Of a stretch of 64,000 nucleotides of DNA, positions 6,046 to 60,915 are shown one piece after another. Below the pieces are notes generated by a model, which saw nothing but the letters and a program-made list of their open reading frames with translations, had not been told where the DNA came from and did not search any database. A program made the translations under genes and the position numbers. Origin of the DNA: Hyalangium minutum (GTDB lineage Bacteria > Myxococcota > Myxococcia > Myxococcales > Myxococcaceae); the NCBI RefSeq assembly GCF_000737315.1, contig NZ_JMCB01000020.1, positions 124,001 to 188,000 on the forward strand. Reading direction: 5' to 3'. How positions within the stretch are numbered: position 1 is the first letter of the stretch; every line of letters starts with the position of its first letter.

Positions 6046-6213
6046 ATGAACTCCAAGCCCTTCGGCAACACCCAGTACAAGTGGCGCCCCATCCAGCCCA
6101 AGAAGATGGGGAACCCGGTCTCGAAGGTGACCCTGGTGGCGGGCAAGCGGATTGGAGGCGCGCTTCGGGCGGAGCAGGCCCGCCAGCAGAAGCGGCGTGA
6201 CACACGGCGTTAG
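6046..6213 (+). CDS. Small basic hypothetical protein (55 aa)
   Basis: GAGGA upstream of ATG 6046; K/R-rich; fills the dctA-dusA gap. Confidence 0.5.
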   Translation: MNSKPFGNTQYKWRPIQPKKMGNPVSKVTLVAGKRIGGALRAEQARQQKRRDTRR

Positions 6214-6289
6214 CCCTGGCCGGAGAGCAGGCCTGGGAGAGGGCGCCTGTCTGAGAGAAGGGGTGGGCGAAGCCGGGAAACCGAGGTAG

Positions 6290-7294
6290 ATGCGTCTGAT
6301 GCTGTCCTATCCTATGCCCCTGTGTGTGGCTCCGATGATGGATTGGACGGACCGGAACTGCCGGTTCTTCCACCGCCAGATCAGCCAGCACACGCTGCTC
6401 TACACGGAGATGCTGACCACGGGCGCCGTCATCCATGGTGACCGCGAGCGGCTCCTGGGTTTTTCGCCGGCGGAGCATCCGGTGGCCCTTCAGCTGGGGG
6501 GCTCGGAGCCCGAGCAGCTGGCGCAGGCCGCGCGCATTGGCGAGGAGTGGGGGTACGACGAGATCAACCTCAACTGCGGCTGCCCGAGCGACCGGGTGCA
6601 GTCGGGGCGGTTCGGCGCGTGCCTGATGGCGGAGCCGGAGCTGGTGGCGCGGTTGGTGGGGGCGATGCGCGAGGCGGTGCGCATCCCGGTGACGGTGAAG
6701 TCACGGCTGGCCATCGACGAAATGGAGGAGTGGCCGACGATCTTGAACTTCGTGAAGCAGGTGTCGGCGGCGGGCTGCCAGCGGTTCATCATTCACGCGC
6801 GCAAGGCGTGGCTGCAGGGGCTGAGCCCGAAGGAGAACCGGGACGTTCCGCCGCTGCGCTACGAGCTGGTGCACCGGCTGAAGGCGGAGTTCCCGCACCT
6901 GGACATCAGCTTGAACGGTGGGGTGAAGACGCTGGACGCAGCAGCGGAGCACTTGCAGCACGTGGATGGGGTGATGATTGGCCGGGCGGCGTACGAGAAC
7001 CCGTACATCATGGCCGACGCGGATCGGCGGTTCTTCGGCTCCACGGCGGCGCCGAGGGACCGGCACGCGGTGGTGGAGGCGATGCTTCCTTATATGGAGG
7101 AGCGCCTGAAGCAGGGAGCACCGCTGAGCGCCATCACCCGGCACATGCTGGGGCTGTTCCAGGGACTGCCGGGGGCGCGCGCCTGGCGCCGGTACCTGAG
7201 CGAGAACGTGCACAAGCCCAGCGCGGGTCCTGAGGTGGTCACCGCCGCGCTCGCGCAGGTGCGGCGGAACGGTCCCGCCGAGGCTGCAGCCTGA
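6290..7294 (+). CDS. dusA: tRNA-dihydrouridine synthase DusA
   Basis: APMMDWTD, EINLNCGCPSDRVQSGRFGACLM, IHARKAWLQGLSPKENR, GVMIGRAAY. Confidence 0.95.
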   Translation: MRLMLSYPMPLCVAPMMDWTDRNCRFFHRQISQHTLLYTEMLTTGAVIHGDRERLLGFSPAEHPVALQLGGSEPEQLAQAARIGEEWGYDEINLNCGCPSDRVQSGRFGACLMAEPELVARLVGAMREAVRIPVTVKSRLAIDEMEEWPTILNFVKQVSAAGCQRFIIHARKAWLQGLSPKENRDVPPLRYELVHRLKAEFPHLDISLNGGVKTLDAAAEHLQHVDGVMIGRAAYENPYIMADADRRFFGSTAAPRDRHAVVEAMLPYMEERLKQGAPLSAITRHMLGLFQGLPGARAWRRYLSENVHKPSAGPEVVTAALAQVRRNGPAEAAA

Positions 7295-7295
7295 C

Positions 7296-7517
7296 TTAAC
7301 CGTTGCCCATGAGGTCCGAGAGGCGCGTGACGGTCAACGCTCGATCGAACCACTGGTCGAGTGTCTCCAGTTCGGTGCATCCCAGGATGCGCTGACGGGT
7401 TCCGTCATCCACGGGGATGCCCCGCTTGGACAGAATGCGCAGCACACTGTCGGCACGTCCTCGGGCTACACCCTTCATCCATCCCTGCTCGATCAGGTCC
7501 TCTGCGATGGTGGTCAT
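7296..7517 (-). CDS. C-terminal module of an Rpn/DUF4351-type protein (RpnS-like); N-terminal nuclease absent
   Basis: MTTIAEDLIEQG...VLRILSKRGIPVDDGTRQRILGCTELETLDQWFDRAL; GGAGGAG RBS before ATG 7517; in-frame TAA about 22 codons upstream. Confidence 0.7.
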   Translation of the reverse strand: MTTIAEDLIEQGWMKGVARGRADSVLRILSKRGIPVDDGTRQRILGCTELETLDQWFDRALTVTRLSDLMGNG

Positions 7518-11149: not shown

Positions 11150-13057
11150 TCAGCCACCGTAGGGGGTGGAGAACTCCGCCCACCGCCCGTTGGGCTGCAG
11201 CCCTGTGCCGGGGTTCTGGGTGCGGTTCTCGGCGGTGCGCAGCTCCCGCGCGGACTTCGCCAGCGACTCGATGGACAGCACGCGCGCGTTGAGCTGCGCG
11301 TCCTCCGCGCCCTCCAGCTGCTGAATCCACGTGCGCATGAAGCGGACGGCGTAGAGCACCTCGTCGCGGTCGAAGATCTCACCCGTCTTCTTCAGGTCCT
11401 CCTCCACCAGGTAGATGAACATCCGGGCGAAGTTGGCGAACATCCGGTTATGCACTGGGCGCCGGCGGCTGTCGGCGGGGGGCGGGCTGAAGTTGTCGCG
11501 CAGCTGCTTGAAGCTGAAGGTGCGCACGCTGGCGATCTTCCCCGTGCCCGCGCGGAAGCCCGGCGCATCCATCCAGTCGCGCGCCGCCGACTTCTCCACC
11601 GCCATCTTCGCGACGACGAAGGCGTGGTGCACGTCGTAGTAGGGCAGCAGGACGGACTCCAGGTAGTCCCCGATGAAGGTGGCGAAGCTGTCGCCCTCGT
11701 AGAGCAGCGCCGGATCCCGCTGGAACGACATCAGGAACCAGGTCTGCTGGAACACCTCGCTCTGCTTGATGCGGGCCTCCGTATAGGAGGGTTCGCTGTG
11801 GATGGTCTGGTCGACGACGGGGGGCAGCACGGTGCACGGGTGCGCTCCGTCGTCGCACGTCACCGGGAGCCTGCGCGCCAGGGGCTGGATGCGCAGGAAG
11901 TCCCCCGTCTCCCAGATGGGGTTGCGGGCGATGACTTTCTCCAGGTGGTTGCGCAGGGGCACGGGCTCGGAGCCGGTGCGCTCGTCCACAAGCAGCTCGG
12001 GGTAGCGCAGGGTGCCGTGACGCAGCATGTGCTGGAAGACCTGGAGCGAGCGGTACTTCAGGCGCATCCACTCACAGGCGCGCGGGTAGTCCGCGAGGTT
12101 GGCGCCGGCCAGATCCGGGTTGCACGCCGTCAGCGCGGGGACGGCGTCGTAGTAGCCCCAGAGGTTGCGGTCGCTCGGGTCGGACAGGTACGCGTCCACC
12201 AGACGGTACCACTCGGCGCTCGCGCTGGGCTTGGGCTGGGTGGCCATGTCCGGGAACCACTCGAAGACGGAGCGGTGCTCCTCGCCATGGAAGCCATCCT
12301 CGGAGAGGTGGTCGAACGGCAGGCCCAGGCGCAGCTGGCGCAGGTCGATGGCGAGCAGCTCCTCATAGGCCTGGCGGGCCTTCTCCAGCGAGTCGATGCG
12401 GCCGGTGGCCCACAGCAACTTCCGGTCGTTGAGCAGGTGGTCCATGAAGAGCTCGTCCCGCTCGCTCTGGGCGCGCGAGTCATGGACGGGCAGGCCTTGT
12501 GTCTTGGCGGCGAAGGGCTCGTAGGCGGGCTGGAGCGGCCGGAAGCGCGCGGGGTGCAGCAGGCGCTTCATGTCGTAGCGCTGCCGCTGCACATGGACGA
12601 GGCCGACGATGGCCTGGGCCCGGGCGCTGTCGACATGGGTGGCGGCGCGCCGGAGCACATCTGCGTCCGTGTACCCGACACGCGCCAGCTCGATGGCATC
12701 TGGGCTGTGGCAGCTGGCGCAGGAGCCGCGCGTGCCCTCGTAGCGCCAGGCCGCGAGGCCCGTGTTGTAGCGGGTCTGCAGTTCCTCGGCGCTCATCGCG
12801 CTCGCCACCGCATAGGGCGTGCCGCACAGGGGATCCGAGCCAGAGGACTCAGGGCAGAGCAGGGACTCGGGGTACTCGGCGGCCTCGGAGACCGGGGGGG
12901 TGGGCACCGAAGGCACCGGGTTCTCCGGCGTGGGCTCGGGGGGAGGGGGGGCCTTATCGCCGCAAGCCACCAGCACCAGCAGCGCTCCGAGCGGCAGCAG
13001 CCGCAGGGAGGACGTGGACCCACAACGCGGAAGGCCAATCGTCAGGAGCGAGCGCAT
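11150..13057 (-). CDS. Lipoprotein with a single CXXCH heme-binding motif, function unknown
   Basis: Lipobox LVAC, Pro-rich linker, CASCH. Confidence 0.75.
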   Translation of the reverse strand: MRSLLTIGLPRCGSTSSLRLLPLGALLVLVACGDKAPPPPEPTPENPVPSVPTPPVSEAAEYPESLLCPESSGSDPLCGTPYAVASAMSAEELQTRYNTGLAAWRYEGTRGSCASCHSPDAIELARVGYTDADVLRRAATHVDSARAQAIVGLVHVQRQRYDMKRLLHPARFRPLQPAYEPFAAKTQGLPVHDSRAQSERDELFMDHLLNDRKLLWATGRIDSLEKARQAYEELLAIDLRQLRLGLPFDHLSEDGFHGEEHRSVFEWFPDMATQPKPSASAEWYRLVDAYLSDPSDRNLWGYYDAVPALTACNPDLAGANLADYPRACEWMRLKYRSLQVFQHMLRHGTLRYPELLVDERTGSEPVPLRNHLEKVIARNPIWETGDFLRIQPLARRLPVTCDDGAHPCTVLPPVVDQTIHSEPSYTEARIKQSEVFQQTWFLMSFQRDPALLYEGDSFATFIGDYLESVLLPYYDVHHAFVVAKMAVEKSAARDWMDAPGFRAGTGKIASVRTFSFKQLRDNFSPPPADSRRRPVHNRMFANFARMFIYLVEEDLKKTGEIFDRDEVLYAVRFMRTWIQQLEGAEDAQLNARVLSIESLAKSARELRTAENRTQNPGTGLQPNGRWAEFSTPYGG

Positions 13058-13125
13058 GGCCGGAGATCAGACGGCCAGGCGGCAAGCCCGGTCAAGCGGG
13101 CAGCAGGACCCCTGTGCCTTCAAGA

Positions 13126-14082
13126 CTAGAACTGGCCAGCGCGGGCCTCGTCGAAGGACACCCGGTGCTTCATGTAGAGGGTGTCCAGCATGTGGTTGCT
13201 GATCGGGTTGAGGTTGCCGTCCGTGAAGCGGTGCACCACCGCGCCCTTGCCCGCGTCCTTCAGGAACTGGAGCGGATCCAAGCTGCCGCCCAGGCCCGTG
13301 AGCGTGGGCACGGGGTCCGCGTTGTTGACGTAGTGCACGTACTGCGGCCCGTCCGGGTACTTCGTCGAGGCAGCCCCGAAGGTCTCCACCTTGAGGTGGC
13401 TCATCAGGTTCTCCACCTGATCCTTGGACATCCCGTCCTCGGCGCGCAGCCGCTTCTCCACATCAAAGAGGGCGCGCGCGGTGATGAGGCCGCCCTGGCT
13501 GTAGCCCATCAGGTGCACGTCGCGGCCGGCCTTCAGCTCCGAGTAGACGGTGTCGGCCAGCGTGTCCACGGCGGGGTTGGTGCCCTTGTCGAGCTTGTCC
13601 GTCACGCACTGGGCCAGGTCCGCCGTCAGGCCCTGGGTGGCGTTGTGGATGCCCACCACCTTGGCGCCCGAGGTCTCCGCGATGGACTGCATCTCCTTCA
13701 TCTGGCCATCCAGCGGCGTCATGATGCCGTTGACGTAGAGGAGGGTCTCCGAGGGGTTCGGGTTGTTCTTCGGCGTGACGCCGGGGATCTGGCTCAGCGG
13801 GGTGCCGGGCGGGAACGTCTGGCCCTGCGTGCCCACGAGCTTCCCGTCGTTCAGGCGGTCCGGCTTGGCGTCACCGCCGAACAGCTTGTTCAGCTCCGCT
13901 CCGTGCGCGGCCTCGAACACGTCCAGGCCCATCTTCACGAAGCGGGGAATGTCGGCGATGCCGTCCTTGGCCAGGTCCACCAACTTCCCGATGGGATTCA
14001 GGGACTTGGACTCGGGGGTGGCGCGCGCGGCGGTGGTGCTGGCCGGGCTGAACGCGCTCTGGTTGCGGTGGATGGAAGTCAT
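13126..14082 (-). CDS. Alpha/beta-hydrolase-fold (lipase/cutinase-like) protein
   Basis: HLMGYSQGG nucleophile elbow; NNADPVP; C-terminal NH; GGAG RBS before ATG 14082. Confidence 0.75.
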   Translation of the reverse strand: MTSIHRNQSAFSPASTTAARATPESKSLNPIGKLVDLAKDGIADIPRFVKMGLDVFEAAHGAELNKLFGGDAKPDRLNDGKLVGTQGQTFPPGTPLSQIPGVTPKNNPNPSETLLYVNGIMTPLDGQMKEMQSIAETSGAKVVGIHNATQGLTADLAQCVTDKLDKGTNPAVDTLADTVYSELKAGRDVHLMGYSQGGLITARALFDVEKRLRAEDGMSKDQVENLMSHLKVETFGAASTKYPDGPQYVHYVNNADPVPTLTGLGGSLDPLQFLKDAGKGAVVHRFTDGNLNPISNHMLDTLYMKHRVSFDEARAGQF

Positions 14083-14223
14083 GGGAGGCTCCTGCAAACC
14101 TTTGCTTTGAAAGGTGATGCTTTGCCTGAATTATCCCACATGGTGGGGGAAAGTTGCGTGCCTGCGCCCACATTGTGGTGAAAAGTCGTTTTCGAAGGGG
14201 CCGCGCGCCTGGGGAGGGAGGGC

Positions 14224-30584: not shown

Positions 30585-33500
30585 ATGGGTGAACTTTTTC
30601 CAGGCGAGGAAGTGGCAGCGCCAGGGGCTTCGCGGGGACTGGCTTCACGAGGGGCGAACACCCTCCTGAATGCCGAGCCTCCTACGGGCACAGTGGCCCT
30701 GGTCTTCACCGATGTTCCTGCGGCCGCGCGGCTCTGGGAGCGGTGCCCCGAGGCGATGGGGGACGCGCTCGAGATCCAGGACCAGGTGCTGCGGGTCCTG
30801 CTGGATCGGTGTGGCGGCTACGAGGTGAAGACGCAGGGCGGGGCGTTCATGGTCGCGTTTGCCTCGCCTCGGGAGGCGGTGCGCTGGTGCCTGGTGGCCC
30901 AGGAGGCGCTGCTCATGGCGCCCTGGAGCCCGGAGCTCCTGGCCCAGCCCGAGGCCTCCGAGGAGGTGGGGCCCCGAGGCCTGCTCCACCGGGGCTTGCG
31001 CGTGCGCATGGGCGTGCACGTAGGCGAGCCGGAGATCCGCGTAGATGGGCGCACGGGCCGAGTGGATTATGTCGGCCGCGTGGTGAATGCGGCGGCGCGC
31101 GTGGCGGCCGCAGGTCATGGGGGCCAAGTGCTGGTGAGCGGCGCGGCCTGGGCGCAGGTGGCGGGCTCGGCGGAGCTTCCGGGCCAGGCTGCCCGGCCGC
31201 TGGGCACGTTCCGGCTGCGAGGGCTCGATAGTCCGCTCGCGTTGGTGGAGGTGCTCCCCACCTCGCTGGTGGATCGCAGGTTTGGGGTGTTGCTGGCGGC
31301 CCGCGAGCGGCAGGGCAATGTGCCCGCAGTGCAGCCGGACCTCATTGGCCGGAGCACCGAACTGGAGACGCTGCGGCAGTGGTTCGGCGAGGGCCAGCGG
31401 CTCGTCACCTTGCTGGGACCGGGAGGCATGGGAAAGACCCGGCTCGCCACCCACTTCGGTGGCTTGGAGCTGGAGGCCTGCACCTGGGAGGGCGGGGTGT
31501 GGCTGTGCGAGCTGGCCGAGGCGAGGACCGAGGACGGGCTCTGCCACGCCGTGTGCCAGGCGCTCGGTGTCACCTTGTCGCGGGAGCGGGAGGCGGCGGA
31601 TCCCGTGGAGCAACTGGGGACCGCGCTGAACGGCTACGGGGATGTGCTGATCATCCTCGACAACCTGGAGCAGGCCACGAGCCCTGGAGCGCGGCTGGTG
31701 GAGCGCTGGCTCGCGCTGGCACCCCGGGCGCGCTTCCTGGTCACCTCGCGCGAGGTGCTGGCGCTGCCCGAGGAGCGTCTGCTGGAGCTGGCCTCGCTGT
31801 CGCTGCCGGACGCGGGGGAGACGCGGCTGGAGGAGGTTGCGCGCTCGGAGGCAGTGCGCCTCTTCGTGCAGCGGGCCCGGGAGGTCCGCGGGCGCTTCGA
31901 GCTGACGGCCAAGGAGGCGCCGCACGTGGTGGACATCGTCCGGCGGCTGGACGGGGTTGCCCTGGCCATCGAGCTGGCGGCGGCGCGCACGGGCGTGCTG
32001 GGCGTGAGCCAGCTCCGGGAGCGGCTGTCGCGGCGCTTCGAGCTGCTGCGCACCGGACGGCGGGGGACCTCGGAGCGGCAGGCCACGCTGCGCGGCGCGA
32101 TTGACTGGTCCTGGAACCTGCTGTCGCCGGAGGAGCGGATCGCGCTCGTCCAGTGCTCGGTGTTCCGGGGCGGCTTCACGCAGGAGGCAGCGGAGGCGGT
32201 GGTGGTGGTGCCTGAGAGCGGCGCGAGCGTCCGGCAGGTGCTCCAGTCGCTGCGGGACCGCTCGCTGCTGCGCGCGGTGGAGGCGGAGGACGCGTGCGGC
32301 GAGCCGCGCCTCGGCATGTACGAGAGCATCCGGCAGTACGCCGCGGACCGGCTCCACGAGCAGGGCAGCGAGGCGTCGGTGTTGGCGAGGCACTCACAGT
32401 GGTACCTCGGGCTCGCGCAAGGGTTGAGGCAGCAAGTGCGGGGAGTCAGAGGGGCGGGGGCGCTGCGGCGGCTGGCGCTCGAGCGGGAGAACCTGTTGGC
32501 TGCCTGCGATGAGGCGCTCTCGGGAACTGCGGCAACTCCACGCTCCTTGAAGCTGGCGCTGGCGACACTGGAGGCGCTGGAGCCCGACTTCGTGACGCGT
32601 GGCGCGCTCAGCCTGCTGCTGACGCGGCTCGATCGGGCCCACGAGCTGGCCGGTGCCTTCGCGGGGACTGCCACGCTTTCGGCGGAGATCCTCGCGGTCC
32701 GGGGCCGCGTCCACCTGGAGGCGGGACACCTCGAGCCCGCGCGAGAGGATCTGGAGCGCGCCTGCGCGGCGTTGGGTATCAGTGGAGACGTGGCGGGACA
32801 GAAGCGAGGGCTGGTGGAGCTGTCCATCGTGGCGCGCCAACAGGGAGACCTGGAGGCGGCGTGGCAGTGCATCCAGCAGGCCCAGCAGCTGTCCTCGGGA
32901 GAGGACGGGTGGCTGGAGGCGTACACGCGCGGCAACCTCGGCCTGCTCGAGCAGGCTCGCACGGGCGCGGAGTCCGCGCTGCCTCACCTCCTCGCGGCCC
33001 AGGAGCTGTTCCAGACCGTGGGGGATGTGGCTTCTGAAGTGGGCTTCACCACCCACTGCGCCGTGGCGCTCGGGGAGCTGGGACTCGTGGATGAGGCGGT
33101 GGAGCACGTGTCCGATGCGATGACCCGCGCCGCCAGCGTGGGAGACCGTGGAGGCCACACGCTGGCGCGGCTGCACCTGGGCTGCCTGCTGCTCGAAGGC
33201 GGACGGGCCCTGGAGGCGCGCGAACACCTCACGGCCGCCATGCGCCTGGGACGCCAGCTCGGCGCGCGTCTCTTGGAAGGCCTGGCCATGGGCGAGCTGG
33301 GCCGCACGGAGATGGCGTTGGGAGAGCTGGCGGAGGCGAGGCACTGGCTGGCGGAGGCCGTCTCCGCGCTGGAGGAGGTGGCCCGGTGGCACGCGCTCCG
33401 CTTCGCCGCGCATCGAGCCGCGGTGGAGGCTGTGCTGGGAGATCTCCCGGCCGCGCTGTCGAGCTTCGACGCGCTGGAGGATGAGCCACAGGTCCGCACC

Positions 33501-33719
33501 GATCCGGTCCTGCGCCCGCTCATCACGCTGCTGCGCGCGGCGGCGGAGCTGGCGCTGGCGGACGAGGCCCCGGTGGGAAGTGAAGAGGCAGGTCAGTCCC
33601 TGGCTTCAGCACGGCGGCGCGTGGCGGCCGTCTCCAACGCACAGGAACGCCCGAACTCCTCGGACATGCGCGGAGCCTTGCGCTTCTTGAAGCAACAGCT
33701 CTCCCGGCGCTACTCCTGA
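30585..33719 (+). CDS. Class III cyclase-like domain + P-loop ATPase + TPR-like helical region
   Basis: LVFTD, RVRMGVHVG, DYVGRVVNAAARV; GPGGMGKT, LDNLEQ, LAIELAAAR. Confidence 0.9.
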   Translation: MGELFPGEEVAAPGASRGLASRGANTLLNAEPPTGTVALVFTDVPAAARLWERCPEAMGDALEIQDQVLRVLLDRCGGYEVKTQGGAFMVAFASPREAVRWCLVAQEALLMAPWSPELLAQPEASEEVGPRGLLHRGLRVRMGVHVGEPEIRVDGRTGRVDYVGRVVNAAARVAAAGHGGQVLVSGAAWAQVAGSAELPGQAARPLGTFRLRGLDSPLALVEVLPTSLVDRRFGVLLAARERQGNVPAVQPDLIGRSTELETLRQWFGEGQRLVTLLGPGGMGKTRLATHFGGLELEACTWEGGVWLCELAEARTEDGLCHAVCQALGVTLSREREAADPVEQLGTALNGYGDVLIILDNLEQATSPGARLVERWLALAPRARFLVTSREVLALPEERLLELASLSLPDAGETRLEEVARSEAVRLFVQRAREVRGRFELTAKEAPHVVDIVRRLDGVALAIELAAARTGVLGVSQLRERLSRRFELLRTGRRGTSERQATLRGAIDWSWNLLSPEERIALVQCSVFRGGFTQEAAEAVVVVPESGASVRQVLQSLRDRSLLRAVEAEDACGEPRLGMYESIRQYAADRLHEQGSEASVLARHSQWYLGLAQGLRQQVRGVRGAGALRRLALERENLLAACDEALSGTAATPRSLKLALATLEALEPDFVTRGALSLLLTRLDRAHELAGAFAGTATLSAEILAVRGRVHLEAGHLEPAREDLERACAALGISGDVAGQKRGLVELSIVARQQGDLEAAWQCIQQAQQLSSGEDGWLEAYTRGNLGLLEQARTGAESALPHLLAAQELFQTVGDVASEVGFTTHCAVALGELGLVDEAVEHVSDAMTRAASVGDRGGHTLARLHLGCLLLEGGRALEAREHLTAAMRLGRQLGARLLEGLAMGELGRTEMALGELAEARHWLAEAVSALEEVARWHALRFAAHRAAVEAVLGDLPAALSSFDALEDEPQVRTDPVLRPLITLLRAAAELALADEAPVGSEEAGQSLASARRRVAAVSNAQERPNSSDMRGALRFLKQQLSRRYS

Positions 33720-33990
33720 GGCGGGAACTCAGGCGTCCTTGATCGGGCGGGTACTGCCCGACGCGCGGGGGCGCTCCGCTGGGACGAACTGGGGGCCCAC
33801 AAACGAGAAACCTGCCTGCCCCTCGGCCTGTGTGGCCACCTGTGCCGAGCCGGGCAGCGTCGGCACCTTCGCCGCGAACAGTTGCGCCGGGGAGCCAATG
33901 GCCGCCACCAGCAGCATGGCCAACGCGCGCGGCCTCTCGCCCGAGGATCTTCCCGAAGCGCTTGCCCGCCTCGCGGATCTCCTGAGCACA

Positions 33991-34168
33991 GTCCGCGATC
34001 GCGGACGAATCGTCCGCGTTGGGAGACTGTCGTCCAAAAAGCGCAGGAAGACCGAGACGTTACACAGAGGCGGTGGAGAGGCGTGAGGCTCGACGAACGG
34101 CCAACTGGCTGAAATGACAGGCGTGAGGATTCGCCGCATACGACGGAGACAGTCCGCGATCGTGGACT
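33991..34168. repeat. Two copies of palindrome GTCCGCGATCG(C/T)GGAC
   Basis: 33991-34006 is a perfect 16-bp palindrome; 34151-34168 has one mismatch; both are preceded by ACA. Confidence 0.8.
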
Positions 34169-34197
34169 AGGCCCGTCGCGCCCTGGGCGAGGTGTAG

Positions 34198-34275
34198 CCG
34201 TTGCGGACAGCTGACCGGTCAGCTGTGGCCGCCATCCCGTTGCAGACAGCTGACCAGTCAGCTGTGGCCGCCTGC
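34198..34275. repeat. Tandem 39-bp duplication, each unit containing a 20-bp palindrome
   Basis: ACAGCTGACCGGTCAGCTGT (34207-34226) and ACAGCTGACCAGTCAGCTGT (34246-34265). Confidence 0.85.
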
Positions 34276-34335
34276 GGGGGAACTGTGGCCGCTTGGGGTT
34301 CTCACCCAGGTGTCCGCCCTTCATGGCTCACCGCG

Positions 34336-34455
34336 ATATTCCTGGACGAGGTGGTGGAACTGTCGCTGGAGCAGCAGGCCCAACTGCTGCGGGTGCTGGA
34401 GCGCGGCGAGGTGAAGCCGGTGGGTGCGGCGCGAGCGTTCCAGGTGGTCGTGAGA
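34336..34455 (+). pseudogene. Fragment of a sigma54-activator AAA+ domain
   Basis: IFLDEVVELSLEQQAQLLRVLERGEVKPVG (Walker B region) with no flanking domain sequence. Confidence 0.75.
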
Positions 34456-34477
34456 GGAGTGGGGACCGGGCCCAGAA

Positions 34478-34493
34478 AGGGACTGAAGTCCCT
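34478..34493 (-). terminator. Short terminator-like hairpin downstream of att-like copy 1
   Basis: Minus strand AGGGAC-TTCA-GTCCCT followed by TTCT. Confidence 0.45.
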
Positions 34494-34518
34494 CAAGGCG
34501 GCTGCCCATGCTCGGAAG

Positions 34519-34542
34519 GGAGGCGGCGGGAATCGAACCCGC
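34519..34542 (-). repeat. tmRNA/tRNA 3'-end-like direct repeat, copy 1 (att-like)
   Basis: Minus strand GCGGG-TTCGATT-CCCGC-CGCCTCC; identical to 37956-37979. Confidence 0.85.
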
Positions 34543-34715
34543 GCCGGGCGGTGCGCAACCTCTAGCAGAATCGCGCCCTTTCCTCGCAACCGCCTGGAAT
34601 GACCTGGAGTCGTTATCCCGCCGCGTCACGTGTCGTCCCGCCCTGTCCCAGCACATTCCGCAGGCTCCTGCGACATACGTGCAACATGACGGAGGCCCCC
34701 ACTATGGCCATGCAG

Positions 34716-35435
34716 TCACCCTGCTGGCCAGGGCTGCAACGGCCGCAGCAACTCGGCCCGGTCCAGCAGTTCGTGGACGTGAGCGGCCAGCGCGACGTGC
34801 TCCGGGTTGGAAGCAGTGAACCGCTCGGGGGTGAGGATGACAAGGGTTCCCTTGTCCTCGACGGGCTCGATACGCACGGGGGCAGGCAGTGGAGGCACTT
34901 TGCCACGCAGCCGCGAGAAGTACATCGCCCAGCCTACGAAGGTGCCCGGCTTCGCTTTGTCCGTCACGCTGTCCCGGTGCGCCTCGGATGTGGCCACACC
35001 CCACTCCGGATCCCAGGCTAGAGCCATAGCGCGCAACACCTCGGTCATCACGGGCGCAGTCAGCACCCGCTCCCCTATGAGCCCCTCATCGTAAGGCTTG
35101 AGCACGCAGTTAGATGGGAGCCGGGGGTCAGCTGAACCGCACGCCCCGTTAACGCTGGACGCCTCCTCCTGGGTGTCGCCCGTCCACAGCCAGAAAGAGA
35201 AGTCATCATCGTTTCGCTTCTCTGCCTCCGCGAACAGCTTCTGGAACCTCGTGGCGTCTGTCGTGAATTGGAGTTTGCGCGCCTCCTCAAAGGAGTCTGC
35301 TGTCTCATACCAGCGGGTCCACGCTGGGTCGCAGCGACCCAGGAGGTGGAAGAAATGCTCCGCGCGGCGTGCACATGCCCCACTGGGTTCGGACCGGGCA
35401 AGCCAGTAGCTGCCAGCGTAGTATGTCTCTGTCAT
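34716..35435 (-). CDS. Imm52 family immunity protein
   Basis: YYAGSYWLAR...WDPEWG...FVGW..Y.SR.RG.VPPLPAPVRIEPVEDKGTLV.LTPERFT; starts 14 nt after the toxin stop. Confidence 0.85.
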   Translation of the reverse strand: MTETYYAGSYWLARSEPSGACARRAEHFFHLLGRCDPAWTRWYETADSFEEARKLQFTTDATRFQKLFAEAEKRNDDDFSFWLWTGDTQEEASSVNGACGSADPRLPSNCVLKPYDEGLIGERVLTAPVMTEVLRAMALAWDPEWGVATSEAHRDSVTDKAKPGTFVGWAMYFSRLRGKVPPLPAPVRIEPVEDKGTLVILTPERFTASNPEHVALAAHVHELLDRAELLRPLQPWPAG

Positions 35436-35449
35436 CGAGCGGCTACTCC

Positions 35450-36886
35450 TCACGGAGTCGGGGTAGGGGAAACATGGACGACCTCGATGTCCTCGAGACC
35501 GTTTGCCTTGAACAGCTTCCTGAGTGCACCCGCGAGTTTCTCCTCAGCGACAATCCACCGGATGGGCGTTCCATTGGCGACTCTGAACTGGCTCTTCGCC
35601 TGCTCCAGGAGTTTGAGGCTGCCCTTGAAGTTCGGCAGGAAGTCTAGCTTCTTGGTGATCCACTGCGCGTAGCCGGTGGCCTTGACCTCAAGCAACACCC
35701 CCTGGTCGAAGCCATCGAAGTCCACCTCCTTGTCACCCACCTGGACGCGGTACGCATAGCCCGGGGGAGCCCCCGTCCTTTGGGCTTGATAGGTCCGGGC
35801 GCTCTCGGACATGTACTCGTCTACCTGGACCCATTCCCCCGGGCCACCGGAACTGGGAGGCGCAGCCTGCGCGCCAGCCTTGCCGCCCGAGATGTCACGC
35901 GCCGCCATGGCGACTGCATTGGGAGCCAGTGCGATGGTGACGCCCTCGGCAGTAATGGCGACCGACTCCACCTGCGCCAGCGCTGGAGCCGTGAAGCGGA
36001 TTCCCAACTGCGTCTCGGCCACCACCGCAGCCTGCCTGGCTCCCGGCAAACTGGGCAGTGCCGCCGCCATCCCCGAAGCCGTGTTCCCCAACGCCACCGT
36101 GCCCAGCATCACGAAGGTTCGGGCCGCCTTCTCTCCCATCGTGTCGCCGAACTTCTCTCCGGACGCGGAGATGCCAGCAAAGGTGGTGGCCTGATCCACT
36201 TCTTTCATCAGCACTAGCCACCCATCAATGAGGCGCCACACCGTGTCCCAGCCCAAGTACGCCATGGCCCCCACCGTCAGCAGCGCAGCCACCCCTTTGC
36301 TCACCGGCTCGGGGAGCGCGAGCAAGATCGCGTACATGGTCAGGCCACTGACGACTGTGGCCACCACCGCCTGGGGGCTCACCATCCGGGCGAGTTCCTC
36401 CTTCATGGCCCCCAGCACTTTGCTGTGAGCAATCGCCATGGCCAGCGCGTACTTGGCATCTCCATCCAGGAAGGGCTTGTCCACCAACAGGCGCAGGCAA
36501 TCCCCGGGGCCCCACGTCCGCTCACACCACTCCAGGTAGCAGCGTTTGAGTTCCTCGTCCTCGGGCAACAGGCGCAGGTTCTGGTGACTGCCCGGCTCCA
36601 AGGCAAGGAGCCGTCGGCCCCTGCTTTCGTACCTGTACCAGCCACTTCGCTCGGGCACTCCGAACAACTGCCGGGCGTGCTCCAAAGGCCACTCCACTAC
36701 AGGCACAGAGAAGGCCTGTTGTGCGACGGCCTTCCTGAACTCCTTCTCGTTCACCACCACCGGTTCTACGTCGCGACGCGGAGTGTGGACGATGGGCTCG
36801 CCCTGGTCCGTGTCCAAGCGGACGACCTTTGTTGTGCTGCACCCTGCGAGGAACGGGACTAGCAGCAGAACCGCCCAGCGTGGCAT
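35450..36886 (-). CDS. Lipoprotein polymorphic toxin with C-terminal Tox-REase-5 domain (SitA-like)
   Basis: GGAGG RBS; lipobox LAGC; C-terminus YQ..TG...VDFDGF..GVLLEVK..GY...Q...PIRWIVAE. Confidence 0.88.
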   Translation of the reverse strand: MPRWAVLLLVPFLAGCSTTKVVRLDTDQGEPIVHTPRRDVEPVVVNEKEFRKAVAQQAFSVPVVEWPLEHARQLFGVPERSGWYRYESRGRRLLALEPGSHQNLRLLPEDEELKRCYLEWCERTWGPGDCLRLLVDKPFLDGDAKYALAMAIAHSKVLGAMKEELARMVSPQAVVATVVSGLTMYAILLALPEPVSKGVAALLTVGAMAYLGWDTVWRLIDGWLVLMKEVDQATTFAGISASGEKFGDTMGEKAARTFVMLGTVALGNTASGMAAALPSLPGARQAAVVAETQLGIRFTAPALAQVESVAITAEGVTIALAPNAVAMAARDISGGKAGAQAAPPSSGGPGEWVQVDEYMSESARTYQAQRTGAPPGYAYRVQVGDKEVDFDGFDQGVLLEVKATGYAQWITKKLDFLPNFKGSLKLLEQAKSQFRVANGTPIRWIVAEEKLAGALRKLFKANGLEDIEVVHVSPTPTP

Positions 36887-37009
36887 GTAGTGCCTCCTGG
36901 CCATGGCCCTCGCGTGCTGGGAGCACGACCCGAGATTACAGGGCGGTCATGACATGCACGTCAATCCAGGGCCTGCCTCGGACTTGGAACTGAACCGAGG
37001 CAGCGTTTC

Positions 37010-37820
37010 TCAATCAGGACGTCGTTCCGGAGAGCAGGCCTTGGATGAGGCGGAGTTGATCCACGAGTCCCTGGATGACCTCACGATGCTCAACCTCCAC
37101 CCTGGGGTAGAGGGGGATGACAGGGGTATCCCGGTAGCTTGGATCTCGCAGGAGCATCGGAGGTGCCTCCAACGCAAGACGCTGCAGGGAGTGCAGCAGT
37201 GCTGGCCAGCACGCCTCGTCAGCGGGAAACTGAAGCCAGAGGGGAGTCTCGGCGAGAGTGTGCCACCGCCACGGGCTGAGCATGAGATAGAAGTCGTGCC
37301 CGGCAAGCCGCACCTTGCGCCAGTAGTACGTGCTGCCAGCACCGCTTGTCCCCTCAAGGGACAGAGGCCCAGCCGAATAGCCTCCTCAGAGACGTCATCA
37401 ACGAGCGCGGCGAACTGGCAGAAACGCCGGCCAATGCCCGCTGACAACTCCTCCGGGCGCAGCGGCAGGAACGCAGTCGTGTCCTCCCGCGTGCACAGCC
37501 CCAGGAGCTGATTCAGGTCCTCGGCAGAAGCGCGATCGCCCTGTGCAAGGGCCGCGCTCTGGAGGCTCTCCAGGAATGGTTTCCAGGCGGCGAGGAGCAG
37601 AAACTTGTTCGGGCCGACCTGCGCCATGAAGTGGTACCCACGCCCGTGCTTTGGCTCGGTTGCGCCGCCCTGAATGCCAGTCTTGCAGCGCAGCAGGAGT
37701 TCTCGCCATAACGTCTGGCGCCGCGTCTCCGGTGCAACCATCAGCACTGCAGTAGGCCTGTCGGCCGGCAGGGCGTCGAGGTACGCCACCGGCTGGCGGT
37801 CGGTGAGCCCCGCCCAGAGT
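37010..37820 (-). pseudogene. 5'-truncated, frameshifted protein, possibly a PD-(D/E)XK nuclease remnant
   Basis: Begins abruptly at LWAGLTDRQP with no credible start. Plausible coding switches frame near 37350-37370 into GTSGAGSTYYWRKVRLAGHDFY. Confidence 0.55.
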
Positions 37821-37910
37821 GGAGCGAGTCTCTGAGAGCGACTGCCACGGATTCAAGATGCTAGAGACGCCACAGGGGCGCACTGAGGACACATGAGGAA
37901 ACCAGGGTCA

Positions 37911-37947
37911 AGAAAAAGCCCAGCAACCCATTGAGACTGCTGGGCTT
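37911..37947 (-). terminator. Rho-independent terminator downstream of att-like copy 2
   Basis: 10-bp stem AAGCCCAGCA/TGCTGGGCTT, 12-nt loop, followed on the minus strand by TTTCTT. Confidence 0.75.
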
Positions 37948-37955
37948 CTCAGGTC

Positions 37956-37979
37956 GGAGGCGGCGGGAATCGAACCCGC
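37956..37979 (-). repeat. tmRNA/tRNA 3'-end-like direct repeat, copy 2 (att-like)
   Basis: GGAGGCGGCGGGAATCGAACCCGC on the plus strand, identical to copy 1. Confidence 0.85.
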
Positions 37980-38036
37980 AGCAGGGCGGAAGCAAAACCC
38001 TCAGCAGGGCGCGCTGTTACCGGCTAACACCAGTTC

Positions 38037-39056
38037 TCAGCGCGCGGGCGGTAGGGGCTCGCCGGCGCCTCGGCGGACGCCGGGCACCTTCAGCAGACGC
38101 TGGAAGACCTGCTCCATCCGGGTGGGCCCCGCGTCATTGCGCACGTCGAGAGTCAGGGTGACATCGTCGAGCCGATGGGCCCGCTCGAAGTCCAGGGGCG
38201 GGCGAGGCAGGTTCTCGATGCCTGCGGCGGGGCCGCGCAGGCCGGCGTTCCACTCGCGCACGAGCTGCTCCACCGAGTAGCCCTGGAGCTGAAGCTGGTA
38301 CGCCTGCTCCGAAGTATCGGAGTACTTCAGCAAGGGCTTGCCCACCACCTCATAGCCCTCCTTGCGCAGCGCGGTGCGCTGGGCACCGGTAAGGAACGTC
38401 TCGGGCGCGAGCGCGGGAGCCTCCGGGTCCGCGAACGGACTGACCGGCACTGTGGCCAGGAAGAAGAGGAACTGGCTTCGCTCCTTCTGGCCCGAGGGAC
38501 GGGCCATGAAGTCCTTCATCGCGGCCAGCAAGGCCCCTCGCCTGGCCTCGAAGACCTTTTGCCTCTGCTCGAGCTGCTTCTTCTGCTCGTCGTCGAGCAG
38601 CTTGTGCTCCACAGCCGCCACGATCAGTTCGTGCACCTGGGCCGTTGGGGCGCCCGTGGTGGCCGGGTCGAAGGAGACATGGACGAGAAACGCGGGAGGC
38701 TCGCCCGGCGTCCGGCGCACCAGAACCTCGCCTGGGATGAAGAGCTCAAGGTGGCCCTCCGGCGTCGTCATCGCCGTCTGGAAGGGCGTCTGGAGAGAAG
38801 GGAACCGGCGCTGCTGCTCGGCATCCCGGGGCCAGGCGAACCACAAGCTGAAGGCCTTCTTCTCCGGGAGCCGTGCCGGCAGCTTCTCGTCCAGGCGAAG
38901 GAGGAGGAGGCCATCCTCGGTCCGTCCCTCTTCCTTCAAGGTGATGCAGGTCCCGTGCGGGTTGCAGACCGCCTTGGACAGCTGCACGCGCGGAGGCGGG
39001 GCCGCCGTCATCAATGAGAGCCCCAGCCCCAGCGTGCCCAGCCACACAGTGCTCAC
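38037..39056 (-). CDS. Hypothetical exported protein
   Basis: 339-aa ORF with a signal-like N-terminus; no recognised domain. Confidence 0.75.
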   Translation of the reverse strand: MSTVWLGTLGLGLSLMTAAPPPRVQLSKAVCNPHGTCITLKEEGRTEDGLLLLRLDEKLPARLPEKKAFSLWFAWPRDAEQQRRFPSLQTPFQTAMTTPEGHLELFIPGEVLVRRTPGEPPAFLVHVSFDPATTGAPTAQVHELIVAAVEHKLLDDEQKKQLEQRQKVFEARRGALLAAMKDFMARPSGQKERSQFLFFLATVPVSPFADPEAPALAPETFLTGAQRTALRKEGYEVVGKPLLKYSDTSEQAYQLQLQGYSVEQLVREWNAGLRGPAAGIENLPRPPLDFERAHRLDDVTLTLDVRNDAGPTRMEQVFQRLLKVPGVRRGAGEPLPPAR

Positions 39057-57303: not shown

Positions 57304-60300
57304 ATGAGCCGGAACCCCCTGAGCAGAGCGGCGATGTTGGTGGTCACGCTGGCAGTGATGGCGTGCGGTCAGGAGTCGCAGCAAGCGGCCTCGGAGGCGG
57401 CCGCCCCGACGACTCGTCAGGATGAACTCGCCCAGTTCAAGGCGCTGATCCTGGCGCGCACCGTGGCGGGTGGCACGGAGAGCGTGGAGTACCAGGCCGC
57501 GAAGAACATGGGCTTTCCGGTGACGCTGGCCTCGGACGAGCAGTGGGCGGGAATGACGGCGGAGCAGTTCGCCGAGTACCGCGTCATCATCCTGGGCGAT
57601 GCCAACTGCGCCAGCCTGAACGTGGCGTCCGCGGCGCTGGCCAACCGCCACGTGTGGGGCCCGGTCATCAACGGCAACGTGCTGATCGCCGGCACGGCGC
57701 CGGTGGCCAACGGGGCGACGTCGGTGACGGAGCAGGCCATCCAGTTCGCCGCGTACTCGCCCGGCCAGACGGGCCTGTACCTGTCCCTGAGCTGCTACTA
57801 CCAGAACGCGGCTCCCGAGACGCACGTGGAGTTGCTGGAGTCGTTCGGCGAGTTCTCGGTGCAGGGCGGTGGCTGCCACGCCAGCGCGCATGTCGTCGGC
57901 GAGCACCCGGCGCTTGCGAATGTGACGGACGCTGCCATGTCCAACTGGCCCTGCTCGGTGAACGCGCAGTTCGACCGCTTCCCGAAGGCCAACTTCGCGC
58001 CCCTGTCCGTGGCCGAGTACTCGGAGAGCTCGCGTGGCTCCGCTCCGGTGCACGAGTTCACGGATGGCCGGATGGGCGCTCCCTACATTCTGGCGCGCGG
58101 CGTGAACCTGCTGGGCTGTGGCAACTACGAGCAGGAGGTGGGTGAGGAGTGCGACTACGGCTACGAGTCCAACGGCCTGGCTGGTTCGGAGTGCTCCGCG
58201 ACGTGCCAGCTGAACTGGTGCGGTGACGGCATCGTGAATCCGGGCGAGGACTGCGACCTGGGCTCGGAGAACGGCCAGGGCGTCTGCCCGCGCTCCTGCC
58301 GGACCATTCCCGCGCCGCCCCCGCCGCCTCCGCCCACGAACCGTCCCCCGGTGGCCCGCTGCCGCCCGGTGCACCTGAGCGCCGGCCCGTCCTGCGGTGG
58401 CGTGGGTGCCTCCATCAACGACGGCTCCTTCGACCCGGATGACAACCTGGTGGGCTGCGTGCAGAGCGCGACGGCGTTCGAGGTGGGCTCCACCCAGGCC
58501 ACGCTGACGTGCACGGACGCGGGCGGGCAGGTGTCCTCCTGCACGGCTCTGGTGAACGTGGTGGATGACAGCGCCCCGAGCATCTCCTGCCCGGCAGCGA
58601 GCTCCTTCGAGTGCGGCACGGCCCAGGCGGCGGTGCTCCCCGCCCACGCGAACGACAACTGCGTGGCTCCCTTCGTGACGCACACCCTGCAGGGCGAGGG
58701 CTACACGCTGGGCACGCCGCGCACGGTGCGCTGGCTGGCGAGCGACGGTACCAACGAGGCGACGTGCTCCACCTCCATCACCATGGTGGACACGCTGGCC
58801 CCGAGCCTCACGCTGCGCGGTGCGGCGCAGCAGCAGCTGGAGTGCGGCGTGGGCAGCTACAGCGAGGCGGGCTACACGGCGAGCGACCTGTGCGCCGGGA
58901 ACCTGGTGGACAGCGTCTCGGTGTCCAGCACGGTGAACGCCAAGGCGGTGGGCACCTACGGGGTGAGCTACCGGGTGGTGGATGGCGCGGGCCAGGAGGC
59001 CACGGCGTCCCGCTCGGTGAAGGTGGTGGACACGCTGGCCCCGGTCCTCTCGCTGGTGGGTGCGCAGTCCCTGAAGCTGGAGTGCGGCGTGGACGGCTTC
59101 ACCCACGCGGGCGCCACGGCGGTGGATGCGTGCTCCGGCACCCTGACGGACGCCATCACCTACAGCGGCACGGTGGACACGAAGGCGGTGGGCAACTACA
59201 GCGTGACGGCGCGCGTGGTGGACGGCGCGGGCCTGGCGGCCACGGCGGTGCGCTCGGTCGAGGTGGCGGACACGAAGGCTCCGGTCCTCTCGCTGGTGGG
59301 TGCGCAGTCCATGCAGGTGGAGTGCGGTGGCAGCTTCACCAACCCGGGCGCCACGGCGACGGACGCGTGCTCCGGCCCCCTGACGGGCGCCATCACCTAC
59401 AGCAGCACGGTGAACACGGCGGCGGTGGGGAGCTACAACGTGACGGCGCGCGTGGTGGACGGTGCCGGCCTGGAGTCCACGGCGGTGCGCACGGTGGCGG
59501 TGGCGGACACGAAGGCCCCGGTCGTCACCCTCTCGGGCGCCAGCCTGGTGAACGTGGAGTGCGGCGTGGGCAGCTACACGGAGGCGGGCGCCTCGGCCAC
59601 CGACGTGTGCACCGGTGACGTGAGCAACCGGCTGAGCATCAGCGGCACGGTAAACACGGCGGCCCGCGGCACGTACACGAAGACCTACAGCGTGACGGAC
59701 GTCTCCGGCAACCAGGCCTCGGCCACCCGCACGGTGAAGGTGAACGACACGCTGGCCCCGAGCATCGCCCTGGTGGGTGCGCAGTCCCTGAAGCTGGAGT
59801 GCGGCGTGGACAGCTTCACCAACCCGGGCGCCACGGCGGTGGATGCGTGCGCTGGCAACCTGACGGGCGCCATCGCCTACAGCGGCGCGGTGAACACGGC
59901 GGTGGTGGGCAACTACACGGTGAACGCCAGCGTGGCGGACGCGGTGGGCCTGTCGGCCACGGCGGTGCGCTCGGTGCAGGTGGCGGACACGAAGGCCCCG
60001 GTCATCACGCTCAACGGCGCCAGCGCGATGACGCTGGAGTGCGGCGTGGGCACCTACACGGAGCAGAGCGCCACGGCGGCGGACGCGTGCACGGGCAACG
60101 TGACCAGCCGGCTGAACATCACCGGCACGGTGAACACGGCGGTCCGCGGCACGTACACGAAGAACTACAGCGTGACGGATGTGTCCGGCAACGTGGCCAC
60201 GGCGACGCGCACGGTGACGGTGAACGACACGCTGGCCCCGACGGTGACGCTGGCAGGCTCGGCCACCATGTCCCTCCAGGTGGGCAGCGCCTACGTGGAG

Positions 60301-60915
60301 CCGGGCTCCTCGGCCACGGACTCCTGCTCCGGGACCCTGACCGTCACCAAGACGGGCACGGTGAACACGGCAGTGCCCGGTACCTACACGCTGACCTACA
60401 CGGCGCGCGATGCGGCGGGCCTGAGCGCCTCCAAGACGCGCACGGTGACGGTGGTGGGCAACACCTGCAACACCACCATCACGGTGAAGCCGACCCAGCA
60501 GATCTGGCCGCCGAACCACAACTACCAGACGTTCACCCTGTCTGACTGCGCCGCCGTGACGACCAACTGCGGCCCCGATGATGACGGTGGCTGCGGCCAC
60601 GGTGGCTCGGCCATCGATGAGATGGGCAAGATCCTCTCCATCTACAGCGACGAGGTGGAGGATGCGAATGGCAACGGCGACGGCAAGACGGACGACGACA
60701 TCGTCATCACCGGCCCGAGCAGCTTCAAGCTGCGCGCCGAGCGCCAGGGCAAGGGCAACGGCCGCATCTACGGCGTGCGCTTCAAGGTGACGGACACCTC
60801 CGGTACCATCAAGACGGCCACCTGCAAGTTCGTGGTGCCGCACGACCAGTCGGACCGCCAGGGCATCGATGACGGCGCCGCCGCGGGCTACACGGTGAAC
60901 GCCCCGAACTGGTAG
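57304..60915 (+). CDS. Large surface lipoprotein with Cys-rich repeats and seven DUF5011/Ig-like repeats
   Basis: Lipobox VMAC; CG..E..CD repeats; 7 units of about 80 aa starting DT(L/K)AP; C-terminal WPPNH...LRAER..GNGRIY. Confidence 0.9.
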   Translation: MSRNPLSRAAMLVVTLAVMACGQESQQAASEAAAPTTRQDELAQFKALILARTVAGGTESVEYQAAKNMGFPVTLASDEQWAGMTAEQFAEYRVIILGDANCASLNVASAALANRHVWGPVINGNVLIAGTAPVANGATSVTEQAIQFAAYSPGQTGLYLSLSCYYQNAAPETHVELLESFGEFSVQGGGCHASAHVVGEHPALANVTDAAMSNWPCSVNAQFDRFPKANFAPLSVAEYSESSRGSAPVHEFTDGRMGAPYILARGVNLLGCGNYEQEVGEECDYGYESNGLAGSECSATCQLNWCGDGIVNPGEDCDLGSENGQGVCPRSCRTIPAPPPPPPPTNRPPVARCRPVHLSAGPSCGGVGASINDGSFDPDDNLVGCVQSATAFEVGSTQATLTCTDAGGQVSSCTALVNVVDDSAPSISCPAASSFECGTAQAAVLPAHANDNCVAPFVTHTLQGEGYTLGTPRTVRWLASDGTNEATCSTSITMVDTLAPSLTLRGAAQQQLECGVGSYSEAGYTASDLCAGNLVDSVSVSSTVNAKAVGTYGVSYRVVDGAGQEATASRSVKVVDTLAPVLSLVGAQSLKLECGVDGFTHAGATAVDACSGTLTDAITYSGTVDTKAVGNYSVTARVVDGAGLAATAVRSVEVADTKAPVLSLVGAQSMQVECGGSFTNPGATATDACSGPLTGAITYSSTVNTAAVGSYNVTARVVDGAGLESTAVRTVAVADTKAPVVTLSGASLVNVECGVGSYTEAGASATDVCTGDVSNRLSISGTVNTAARGTYTKTYSVTDVSGNQASATRTVKVNDTLAPSIALVGAQSLKLECGVDSFTNPGATAVDACAGNLTGAIAYSGAVNTAVVGNYTVNASVADAVGLSATAVRSVQVADTKAPVITLNGASAMTLECGVGTYTEQSATAADACTGNVTSRLNITGTVNTAVRGTYTKNYSVTDVSGNVATATRTVTVNDTLAPTVTLAGSATMSLQVGSAYVEPGSSATDSCSGTLTVTKTGTVNTAVPGTYTLTYTARDAAGLSASKTRTVTVVGNTCNTTITVKPTQQIWPPNHNYQTFTLSDCAAVTTNCGPDDDGGCGHGGSAIDEMGKILSIYSDEVEDANGNGDGKTDDDIVITGPSSFKLRAERQGKGNGRIYGVRFKVTDTSGTIKTATCKFVVPHDQSDRQGIDDGAAAGYTVNAPNW

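Follow-up and report, generated by a model that had tools for sequence, protein, structure and literature searches.

Two copies of the ssrA 3' end around a sitA5-sitI5 cassette in Hyalangium minutum: likely attL and attR of a decayed integrative element

How a toxin/immunity gene pair came to lie between two identical tRNA-like sequences is the question raised by a stretch of 64 kb of Hyalangium minutum DNA (contig NZ_JMCB01000020.1, positions 124,001 to 188,000; hereafter the window, in whose numbering all coordinates are given). In it, a sitA5-sitI5 gene pair is bracketed by two copies of a 24-bp sequence, which we call the core, and the cores, the arm sequences beside them and the cargo genes are all read on the minus strand. 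An earlier interpretation made without database searches (the sequence-only reading) had seen an integron-like array in this arrangement. Our comparisons point instead to the two cores being attL and attR of a decayed integrative element, one of a Myxococcaceae family that naturally targets the 3' end of ssrA, the gene for tmRNA, and we regard this as quite likely.

The core, GCGGGTTCGATTCCCGCCGCCTCC on the minus strand, occurs at 34519-34542 (copy 1) and 37956-37979 (copy 2), just where the sequence-only reading had placed two identical 24-mers, and these are the only matches in the 64 kb at up to 3 mismatches. A chance origin of the repeat was ruled out by a shuffle control, in which 0 of 100 shuffled sequences contained a match to the 24-mer. 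The core consists of a T arm (GCGGG-TTCGATT-CCCGC) and a 3' acceptor strand of 7 nt whose position 70 is T (U70 in the RNA), as had been proposed. The base 3' of the core is C at copy 1 and G at copy 2, and ACCA follows neither. A terminator-like hairpin had been described after each copy, and both hairpins were found: the one after copy 2 is strong (37946-37918, with a T-run at 37917-37910 and a fold z of -2.7) and the one after copy 1 is weaker (34493-34474); a simple terminator scan of the window picked up neither. The arms of about 50 bp said to be homologous between the copies are also recognisably so, over about 50-60 nt upstream of the cores, but they are not equivalent, as copy 1 has a full conserved arm of about 150 nt (arm1) and copy 2 has a diverged version (arm2), with 85 nt matched including the core.

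The core is the 3' end of tmRNA and equals the last 24 nt of a genuine Myxococcaceae ssrA gene. In L175, a contig from a Myxococcaceae metagenome-assembled genome (MAG), a full-length tmRNA (181 bits in Rfam; tag ANDNVELALAA by ARAGORN) terminates in ...CCGGAC and the exact 24-mer, after which come A, the terminator AGCCCAGCAATCTCACCGGGTTGCTGGGTTTTTCTTT and a tyrosine integrase gene in convergent orientation; the same terminator follows copy 2 in the window. When IMG/VR was scanned with the 24-mer, every called gene among the matches listed was a tmRNA 3' end, with GGAC before the core and A(CCA) after it, and the proposal that the core is a tmRNA 3' end is thus borne out by the L175 gene and by many other tmRNA genes. 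Genuine tmRNA genes read ...GTAGA...GGAC before the core and ACCA or AC after it. The window copies are preceded by CCGGC or CTGCT and followed by C or G, and therefore they are not ssrA ends themselves. The possibility that the arms are diverged ssrA sequence was rejected because the genuine ...GTAGA...GGAC pattern does not occur in them. Neither ARAGORN nor Rfam at gathering threshold found a tRNA or tmRNA in the 64-kb window, in agreement with the statement that no such body lies upstream of either copy, and no complete cloverleaf or tmRNA body was detected in the window by covariance model. In the E-value mode of Rfam, the sole tRNA-like match was a 21-bit tRNA-Sec on copy 2 with a mispaired acceptor.

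The setting of the core in more complete relatives indicates what kind of element is involved. In L122 (= L052, an IMG/VR provirus), an Imm52 remnant, arm1, the core, A, a terminator and an intact gene for a 402-aa integrase are contiguous, and the metagenome contigs L176 and L177 read PrimPol/DUF927-HTH_56-HTH_17-int-terminator-core-arm1, where int is the integrase gene. The arm-core-terminator-int junction is uninterrupted in L122 and L176, which supports the earlier idea that the modules are element-side att sequences, and an integrase gene stands next to the att site in L122, L175 and L176 and is missing from that place in the window. When L122 was compared with the window by blastn, its arm side matched 34511-35001 and its terminator side matched 37862-38021; the arm1-core match with L052 runs on into Imm52. 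Terminal overlaps, as a circular, excised form would give, were not found in the metagenome contigs L176 and L177.

From these sequences, the parent family appears to have the 3' end of ssrA as its natural target and an integrase of the tyrosine type. Its attP is made up of a P arm of about 150 nt (arm1), the 24-bp core, equal to the last 24 nt of ssrA, and a P' arm, which brings the discriminator A and an intrinsic terminator ahead of the convergent tyrosine integrase gene. Beyond int come an HTH_17 excisionase-like gene (xis) and then a PrimPol/DUF927 replication gene (rep), and variable cargo adjoins arm1. Strand exchange within the core would rebuild the 3' end of the target, now with the element's terminator behind it, and the far end of the element would retain a second core next to arm1.

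The two halves of such an attP are found in the window on the inner sides of the two cores. At copy 1, arm1 (34543-34692, minus strand) begins about 22 nt past the sitI5 stop codon and is 86-90% identical to the arms in Archangium, Cystobacter, Myxococcus, Vitiosangium and Hyalangium; the segment 34519-34688 has the same 86-90% identity to the arm1-core of relatives. At copy 2, the P' arm (37850-37955, minus strand), with the terminator and the end of the integrase gene, has 80-87% identity with the interval from core to int in L122, L159, L154 and L166, and window 37860-37979 matches the core-terminator-int end at 80-87% identity. This arm retains the last 8 codons and the stop of int (37850-37876, plus strand), which were recognised by alignment with L175, L176 and L122 and read ARDATGAH* in the window versus ASDAGGAH* in L175; homology to these three on the int side breaks off at about 37851. 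Beyond this DNA-level remnant, tblastn with the L052 integrase found nothing in the window, and a profile built from 100 relatives found nothing in its six-frame translation (best E = 3). The earlier statement that there is no integrase therefore holds as regards a gene in the window, but the 8-codon remnant stays and the relatives carry int, xis and PrimPol.

Because the terminator and the int remnant lie inside copy 2 and arm1 lies inside copy 1, the two copies can be assigned to one element, with copy 2 as its putative attL and copy 1 as its putative attR. On the sequence comparison, this element appears to have decayed through loss of int, xis and rep. The sequence-only reading had argued that the copies are not an attL/attR pair, which we do not uphold: the inner flanks are the two halves of one attP, and arm2 (37980-38039, minus strand), the upstream end of which overlaps the stop codon of the flanking gene orf339, seems to be the diverged remnant of a P arm that belonged to an older related element, so that copy 2 would also be the core of the older arm2 module. 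In L159, from a Hyalangium MAG, the arm of the second module shares 92% identity with arm2 plus its core across 85 nt, and arm2 is found in L178 too. A further core-terminator-int-fragment unit in L159 has arm2 at its far end, and therefore arm2 is element-derived as well. The same contig reads arm2-core-CTTCCAAG and, about 90 nt on, a homologue of window 34184-33988; it thus joins both outer halves of the window copies, as expected for a recipient site.

The cassette lies in a variable island of 4.3 kb (33733-38035) between two convergent conserved genes, and this island is absent in three related Hyalangium lineages. Its GC content is 60-66%, compared to about 70% in the flanks. In L179/L180 (a metagenome lineage), L181 (H. 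versicolor) and L182 (H. gracile), orf339 directly adjoins the convergent cyclase gene, and blastn placed the breakpoints at L179 positions 9018 (window 38036) and 9014 (window 33732). Empty sites of the kind that the sequence-only reading had suggested looking for are thus present in L179-L182, and other content was found at the site in L178 and L183. The closest relative, L178, has flanks 94.8% identical to those of the window and contains orf339, arm2 and the core with one mismatch, and after them a SitA6/SitI6 cassette (matching TIGR02269 and TIGR02264) that has one core only; window-like sequence resumes from 34352. In L183, another Hyalangium-like contig, unrelated genes follow orf339. 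Since SitA5/I5 in the window is replaced by SitA6/I6 in L178 and by yet other content in L183, the site is a plasticity zone.

On the preferred reading, an element bearing sitA5-sitI5 would have recombined with a core between orf339 and the cyclase gene instead of with ssrA, and the arm2-core already there would have been what was left of the attR of an older related element. The outcome would have been the order arm2-core-terminator ... sitA5-sitI5-arm1-core. Later deletion would have removed the int-xis-rep module except for 8 int codons, and the remainder would be an integrase-less, att-flanked cassette of the type known as a cis-mobilisable element (CIME). After excision of the cassette, the healed site would read arm2-core-CTTCCGAG. 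We infer this order of events from the arrangement of the parts, together with the action of an integrase on these cores and a cassette that may still be movable in trans. The pattern matches one in which ssrA-type islands accrete in tandem and decay; it is CIME-like and, here, away from ssrA. An island remnant of this kind is familiar and its setting away from ssrA is unusual; the locus is otherwise one of ordinary island accretion and decay.

Several observations weigh against this reading. The identity of the core with the host's own ssrA end would be an extrapolation from the Myxococcaceae MAG. The locus lacks an ssrA gene: the 26 kb of the window that lie upstream contain none, and the 17-kb stretches syntenic to it in relatives are likewise without one. 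The core was not found at up to 5 mismatches in the empty alleles of L179-L182, and these truly empty alleles without core-like sequence leave the founding event at the site unexplained. The attB-like junction of L159 shares with the window just 8 nt right after the core and a 197-nt block about 90 nt on. Neither an excision product nor integrase activity has been observed. Finally, some integrase relatives at 70-77% identity adjoin tRNA-Asp or tRNA-Leu, so that belonging to the family is not enough to assume ssrA specificity. The Myxococcaceae have hundreds of integrase relatives, and among L173-L175 only L175 is at a genuine ssrA; the relative in L173 has neither core nor tRNA adjoining, and that in L174 (Myxococcus sp. 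Y35, 11275-14183), 75% identical to the integrase of L122, is next to tRNA-Asp. In L174, a duplicated tRNA-Val/tRNA-Asp set surrounds orphan Imm35-like and Imm5-like immunity genes, an arrangement that by analogy seems to follow the accretion logic of the core sites, but at a tRNA site.

The arm and core form a module that is widespread in the family. A scan for the arm end plus the core, with one genome per species, found 34 loci (L139-L172), with up to four in a genome. They come from Archangium, Cystobacter, Hyalangium, Vitiosangium, Myxococcus, Pyxidicoccus and Corallococcus (Myxococcaceae/Archangiaceae), and the remaining ones from MAGs labelled Myxococcaceae and one unclassified delta-proteobacterial MAG. 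About 150 nt of the arm are conserved, the base after the core is mostly A, and the downstream flanks fall into a few classes. A second core (up to 4 mismatches) was present within 8 kb at 10 of the 34 loci, so that arrays of cores, as the sequence-only reading supposed, do exist; modules in which int is missing or truncated are common, and no ssrA was found beside the modules in the 34 genome loci. As had been anticipated, the content between and around the cores varies from locus to locus: Pfam and NCBIfam searches identified kinases, DUF5953, DUF6310, DUF2381, insertion sequence (IS) elements, P450 and helicases upstream of the modules. A fixed link of the module with SitA5/Imm52 was ruled out, as tblastn found no homologues beside the 34 modules. 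Among the cargo next to the arms in L139-L172, DUF6310 and DUF5953 were each seen three times and Ser/Thr kinases six times, and our literature search found nothing on DUF6310 or DUF5953.

At two of these loci, L154 and L166 (Archangium minus and Vitiosangium), the arm1-core-terminator unit directly abuts a convergent hrpA with the same junction in both. The hrpA gene is probably the native neighbour downstream of ssrA, and the modules that abut it may represent the distal end of a true ssrA array. If the junction is such an end, the class-B terminator would be the native ssrA terminator, of which the element carries a copy.

The sequence-only reading held that a trans-acting, ssrA-linked integrase swaps integrase-less toxin/immunity cassettes, each insulated by a terminator, and parts of the evidence agree with it: two perfect cores surround a cassette without an integrase, SitA5/I5 and SitA6/I6 occupy the same chromosomal site in the window and its closest relative, orphan immunity genes adjoin the att sites in L174 and L122, and modules lacking all or part of int are frequent. 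As in integrons, recombination sites are repeated between short cargo units, the recombinase is of the tyrosine type, and mobilisation in trans is possible in principle. However, the window contains no resident platform of integrase, attI and common promoter (Pc). No recombinase was present among the gene calls around the array, and the six-frame translation of the 64 kb gave no match to the integrase profile, which represents this tyrosine-integrase family and not IntI. The unit is also unlike the promoterless attC cassettes of integrons, being a two-gene operon with backbone remnants, and its sites are tRNA-like cores with arms of about 150 nt rather than attC hairpins. Furthermore, the SitA6/I6 cassette of L178 has a single core, most of what lies beside the 34 arms is cargo of other kinds than toxin/immunity, such as kinases, helicases, P450 and IS elements, and the int remnant in the window means that the element was once autonomous. 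Accretion and decay account for every feature without a dedicated cassette system, and we consider an integron-like array unlikely.

Two further explanations were weighed. The arm and core might constitute a gene or a 3'-UTR element, carried by the elements, for a D-armless tRNA-like RNA with a 5-bp acceptor, a long arm and a T arm; the sequence would then be conserved for its function as RNA and not for the binding of integrase. The module lies just 3' of sitI5 and 5' of a hairpin, and therefore would be co-transcribed; the arm is 86-90% conserved across genera amid unrelated flanks; and RNAalifold gave a tRNA-like fold with 98% of cells paired, compared to 43-59% in slid controls, although the paired percentage is inflated because the fold was derived from these same sequences. 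ARAGORN was even misled into calling a tmRNA at L149 (2757-3092, tag ARRARASDFPA), a spurious call at a place where an arm1+core module and a kinase gene overlap, which arose because of the tRNA-like 3' end of the module. On the other hand, no pair has changed on both sides and the covariation score was indistinguishable from that of shuffles, Rfam found nothing except the weak tRNA-Sec match on copy 2 already mentioned, copy 2 and several loci retain just 20-60 nt of the arm, and the GGGAC repeats and palindromes in the arm look like protein-binding sites; an RNA of this kind is in our judgement very improbable. Still harder to credit is that the copies are 3' fragments of the native ssrA that have been displaced, or ssrA pseudogenes, in an island array that is still directly downstream of the host ssrA. 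This is the customary origin of such repeats (PMC3146451), and an arm1-core-terminator that abuts hrpA, as in L154 and L166, would be expected at the distal end of a true array. The sequence upstream of both cores is not tmRNA-like, however, the genuine order being ...GGAC, core and ACCA or AC; the window contains no tmRNA; and in relatives the two flanking genes adjoin each other and have no tmRNA near them. A native ssrA array at this locus is thus ruled out by synteny.

The cargo of the putative decayed element is a canonical SitA toxin pair. The sitA5 gene (35450-36886, minus strand) encodes an outer-membrane-exchange lipoprotein toxin with a SitA5 escort domain (NCBIfam NF050093, SitA5_escort, 1.3e-103, 346 bits where the cutoff is 160) and, at the C terminus, a Tox-REase-5 nuclease domain (Pfam PF15648, 1.6e-11); it has a LAGC lipobox, and its 478-aa product is on record in GCA_000737315.1. 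The adjoining downstream sitI5 (34716-35435, minus strand; gene call in L121) matches the Imm52 immunity family over its full length (Pfam PF15579, 7.7e-104), so that lipoprotein signal, escort domain, C-terminal toxin and downstream Imm52 gene are all present. Apart from this pair, the interval between the cores contains only a frameshifted pseudogene of a conserved hypothetical protein of about 355 aa (37010-37800, minus strand), visible as two overlapping open reading frames in different frames, and no recombination or transfer genes. Homologues of the pseudogene product, 352-356 aa long, occur in Hyalangium, Archangium, Corallococcus and Myxococcus (93% identity to that of H. versicolor, with 57% of the query covered), and Pfam and NCBIfam gave no match to it.

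The closest described counterparts are the genomic islands specific to ssrA (ssrA-GIs) of Dehalococcoides, which are bounded by a 20-bp ssrA repeat with a non-ssrA motif upstream of each copy and an integration module at attL, and for which the authors invoked cis-mobilisable elements and accretion (PMC3146451). Tandem accretion and decay have already been described for tRNA- and tmRNA-targeting islands (PMC3146451). The window locus and its relatives share with the ssrA-GIs the short direct repeat of the ssrA 3' end (24 bp here and 20 bp in the ssrA-GIs), insertion in the T-loop/T-arm region, the conserved non-ssrA motif just upstream of the repeats, the integration module by attL with variable cargo by attR, and tandem islands, some of them without integration genes. 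They differ in that the recombinase is a serine recombinase there and a tyrosine integrase here, that the repeats lie within 100 kb downstream of ssrA there and between ordinary genes with no ssrA nearby here, and that the cargo consists of dehalogenase genes there and a SitA toxin pair here. Tandem islands of this kind are reportedly also treated in Williams (2003), 'Traffic at the tmRNA gene'.

CIMEs arising from accretion of integrative elements have been reviewed (PMC5704250), catalogued (PMC6323972) and invoked for the ssrA-GIs (PMC3146451). Like them, the window segment is flanked by attL and attR and encodes neither integrase nor transfer functions, and in both cases a second element enters the att site of a resident and the modules then decay. 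CIMEs were defined for Firmicutes families of integrative and conjugative elements and integrative and mobilisable elements; the window segment is a putative member of the class. Integration at tRNA-Asp is known from myxophages of the Mx8 type. The window integrase family has relatives of 75% identity beside tRNA-Asp, with the same terminator after int; unlike the Mx8 type, however, its target here is an ssrA-type core, and attP is not part of the int coding sequence but is located about 75 nt past its stop codon.

The two genes that bound the island are conserved. At its left boundary, orf339 (38037-39056, minus strand) has homologues in H. versicolor, H. gracile, H. rubrum and MAGs, with synteny kept, and all its relatives are from Hyalangium. 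At its right boundary is a guanylate-cyclase/AAA/TPR gene of 1044 aa (30585-33719, plus strand), identified from gene calls and Pfam in L121 and L179-L182 and by blastn. In L183, the gene after orf339 (3611-7471) encodes a caspase (Peptidase_C14)/nSTAND/WD40 protein of 1286 aa, and therefore the site takes unrelated conflict-type genes too. At the island ends, comparison with the empty L179 allele revealed a 4-5-nt repeat, CTGAG/TGAG, at 38031-38036 and 33733-33737, which could be microhomology or a short target duplication.

The outer flank of the island (33733-34518) contains a weak hairpin, a sigma-54 activator fragment and palindrome repeats, and parts of it are common to L159 (34184-33988) and L178 (34352-34158). 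The fragment (34333-34467, plus strand) is a gene relic encoding 45 aa of the activator AAA+ domain (profile positions 96-140 of 168). Two direct units of about 45 nt, at 34158-34290 and about 33990-34160, each contain the palindrome CAGCTGAC(Y)GGTCAGCTG and lie outside the core-to-core segment; they gave spurious miRNA matches in Rfam and are partly common to L178 and L159. The motif GTCCRCGATCGCGGACTGT is repeated near these units within the island. Elsewhere in the window, seven tandem units of about 240 nt (80 aa in frame) at 58789-60482 probably encode a repeat-domain surface protein.

It is SitA toxins that determine which cells of myxobacteria can unite in a single social group. Their sitAI loci number 25-80 per genome and are said to be 'frequently on mobile DNA' (PMC8546572), and two papers deal with Mx-alpha prophage-like units and general horizontal transfer (PMC5562445, PMC8546572); the SitA and Mx-alpha papers searched (PMC8546572, PMC5562445) make no mention of tmRNA/ssrA att sites or of an integrase. 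The arm of about 150 nt and the 24-bp ssrA core offer a concrete vehicle and a searchable signature for mapping sitAI cassettes, and one chromosomal site is seen to be occupied by SitA5/I5 in one strain and by SitA6/I6 in the closest relative that has been sequenced. The analysis also documents a Myxococcaceae family of ssrA-targeting tyrosine-integrase elements, relatives of which have switched to tRNA-Asp and tRNA-Leu, and is of moderate interest to workers on myxobacterial kin discrimination and mobile elements. A more tentative idea, which we think doubtful, is that leftover arm-core modules serve as portable secondary att sites, recruiting elements and also integrase-less cassettes with the integrase supplied in trans; in a still more remote variant, the arm and core might also be expressed, giving the cargo transcript a tRNA-like 3' tail. 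If portable att sites of this kind were real, exchangeable arrays of toxin/immunity and defence genes would build up away from ssrA, and this would be one route by which myxobacteria gather and reshuffle their dozens of sitAI loci.

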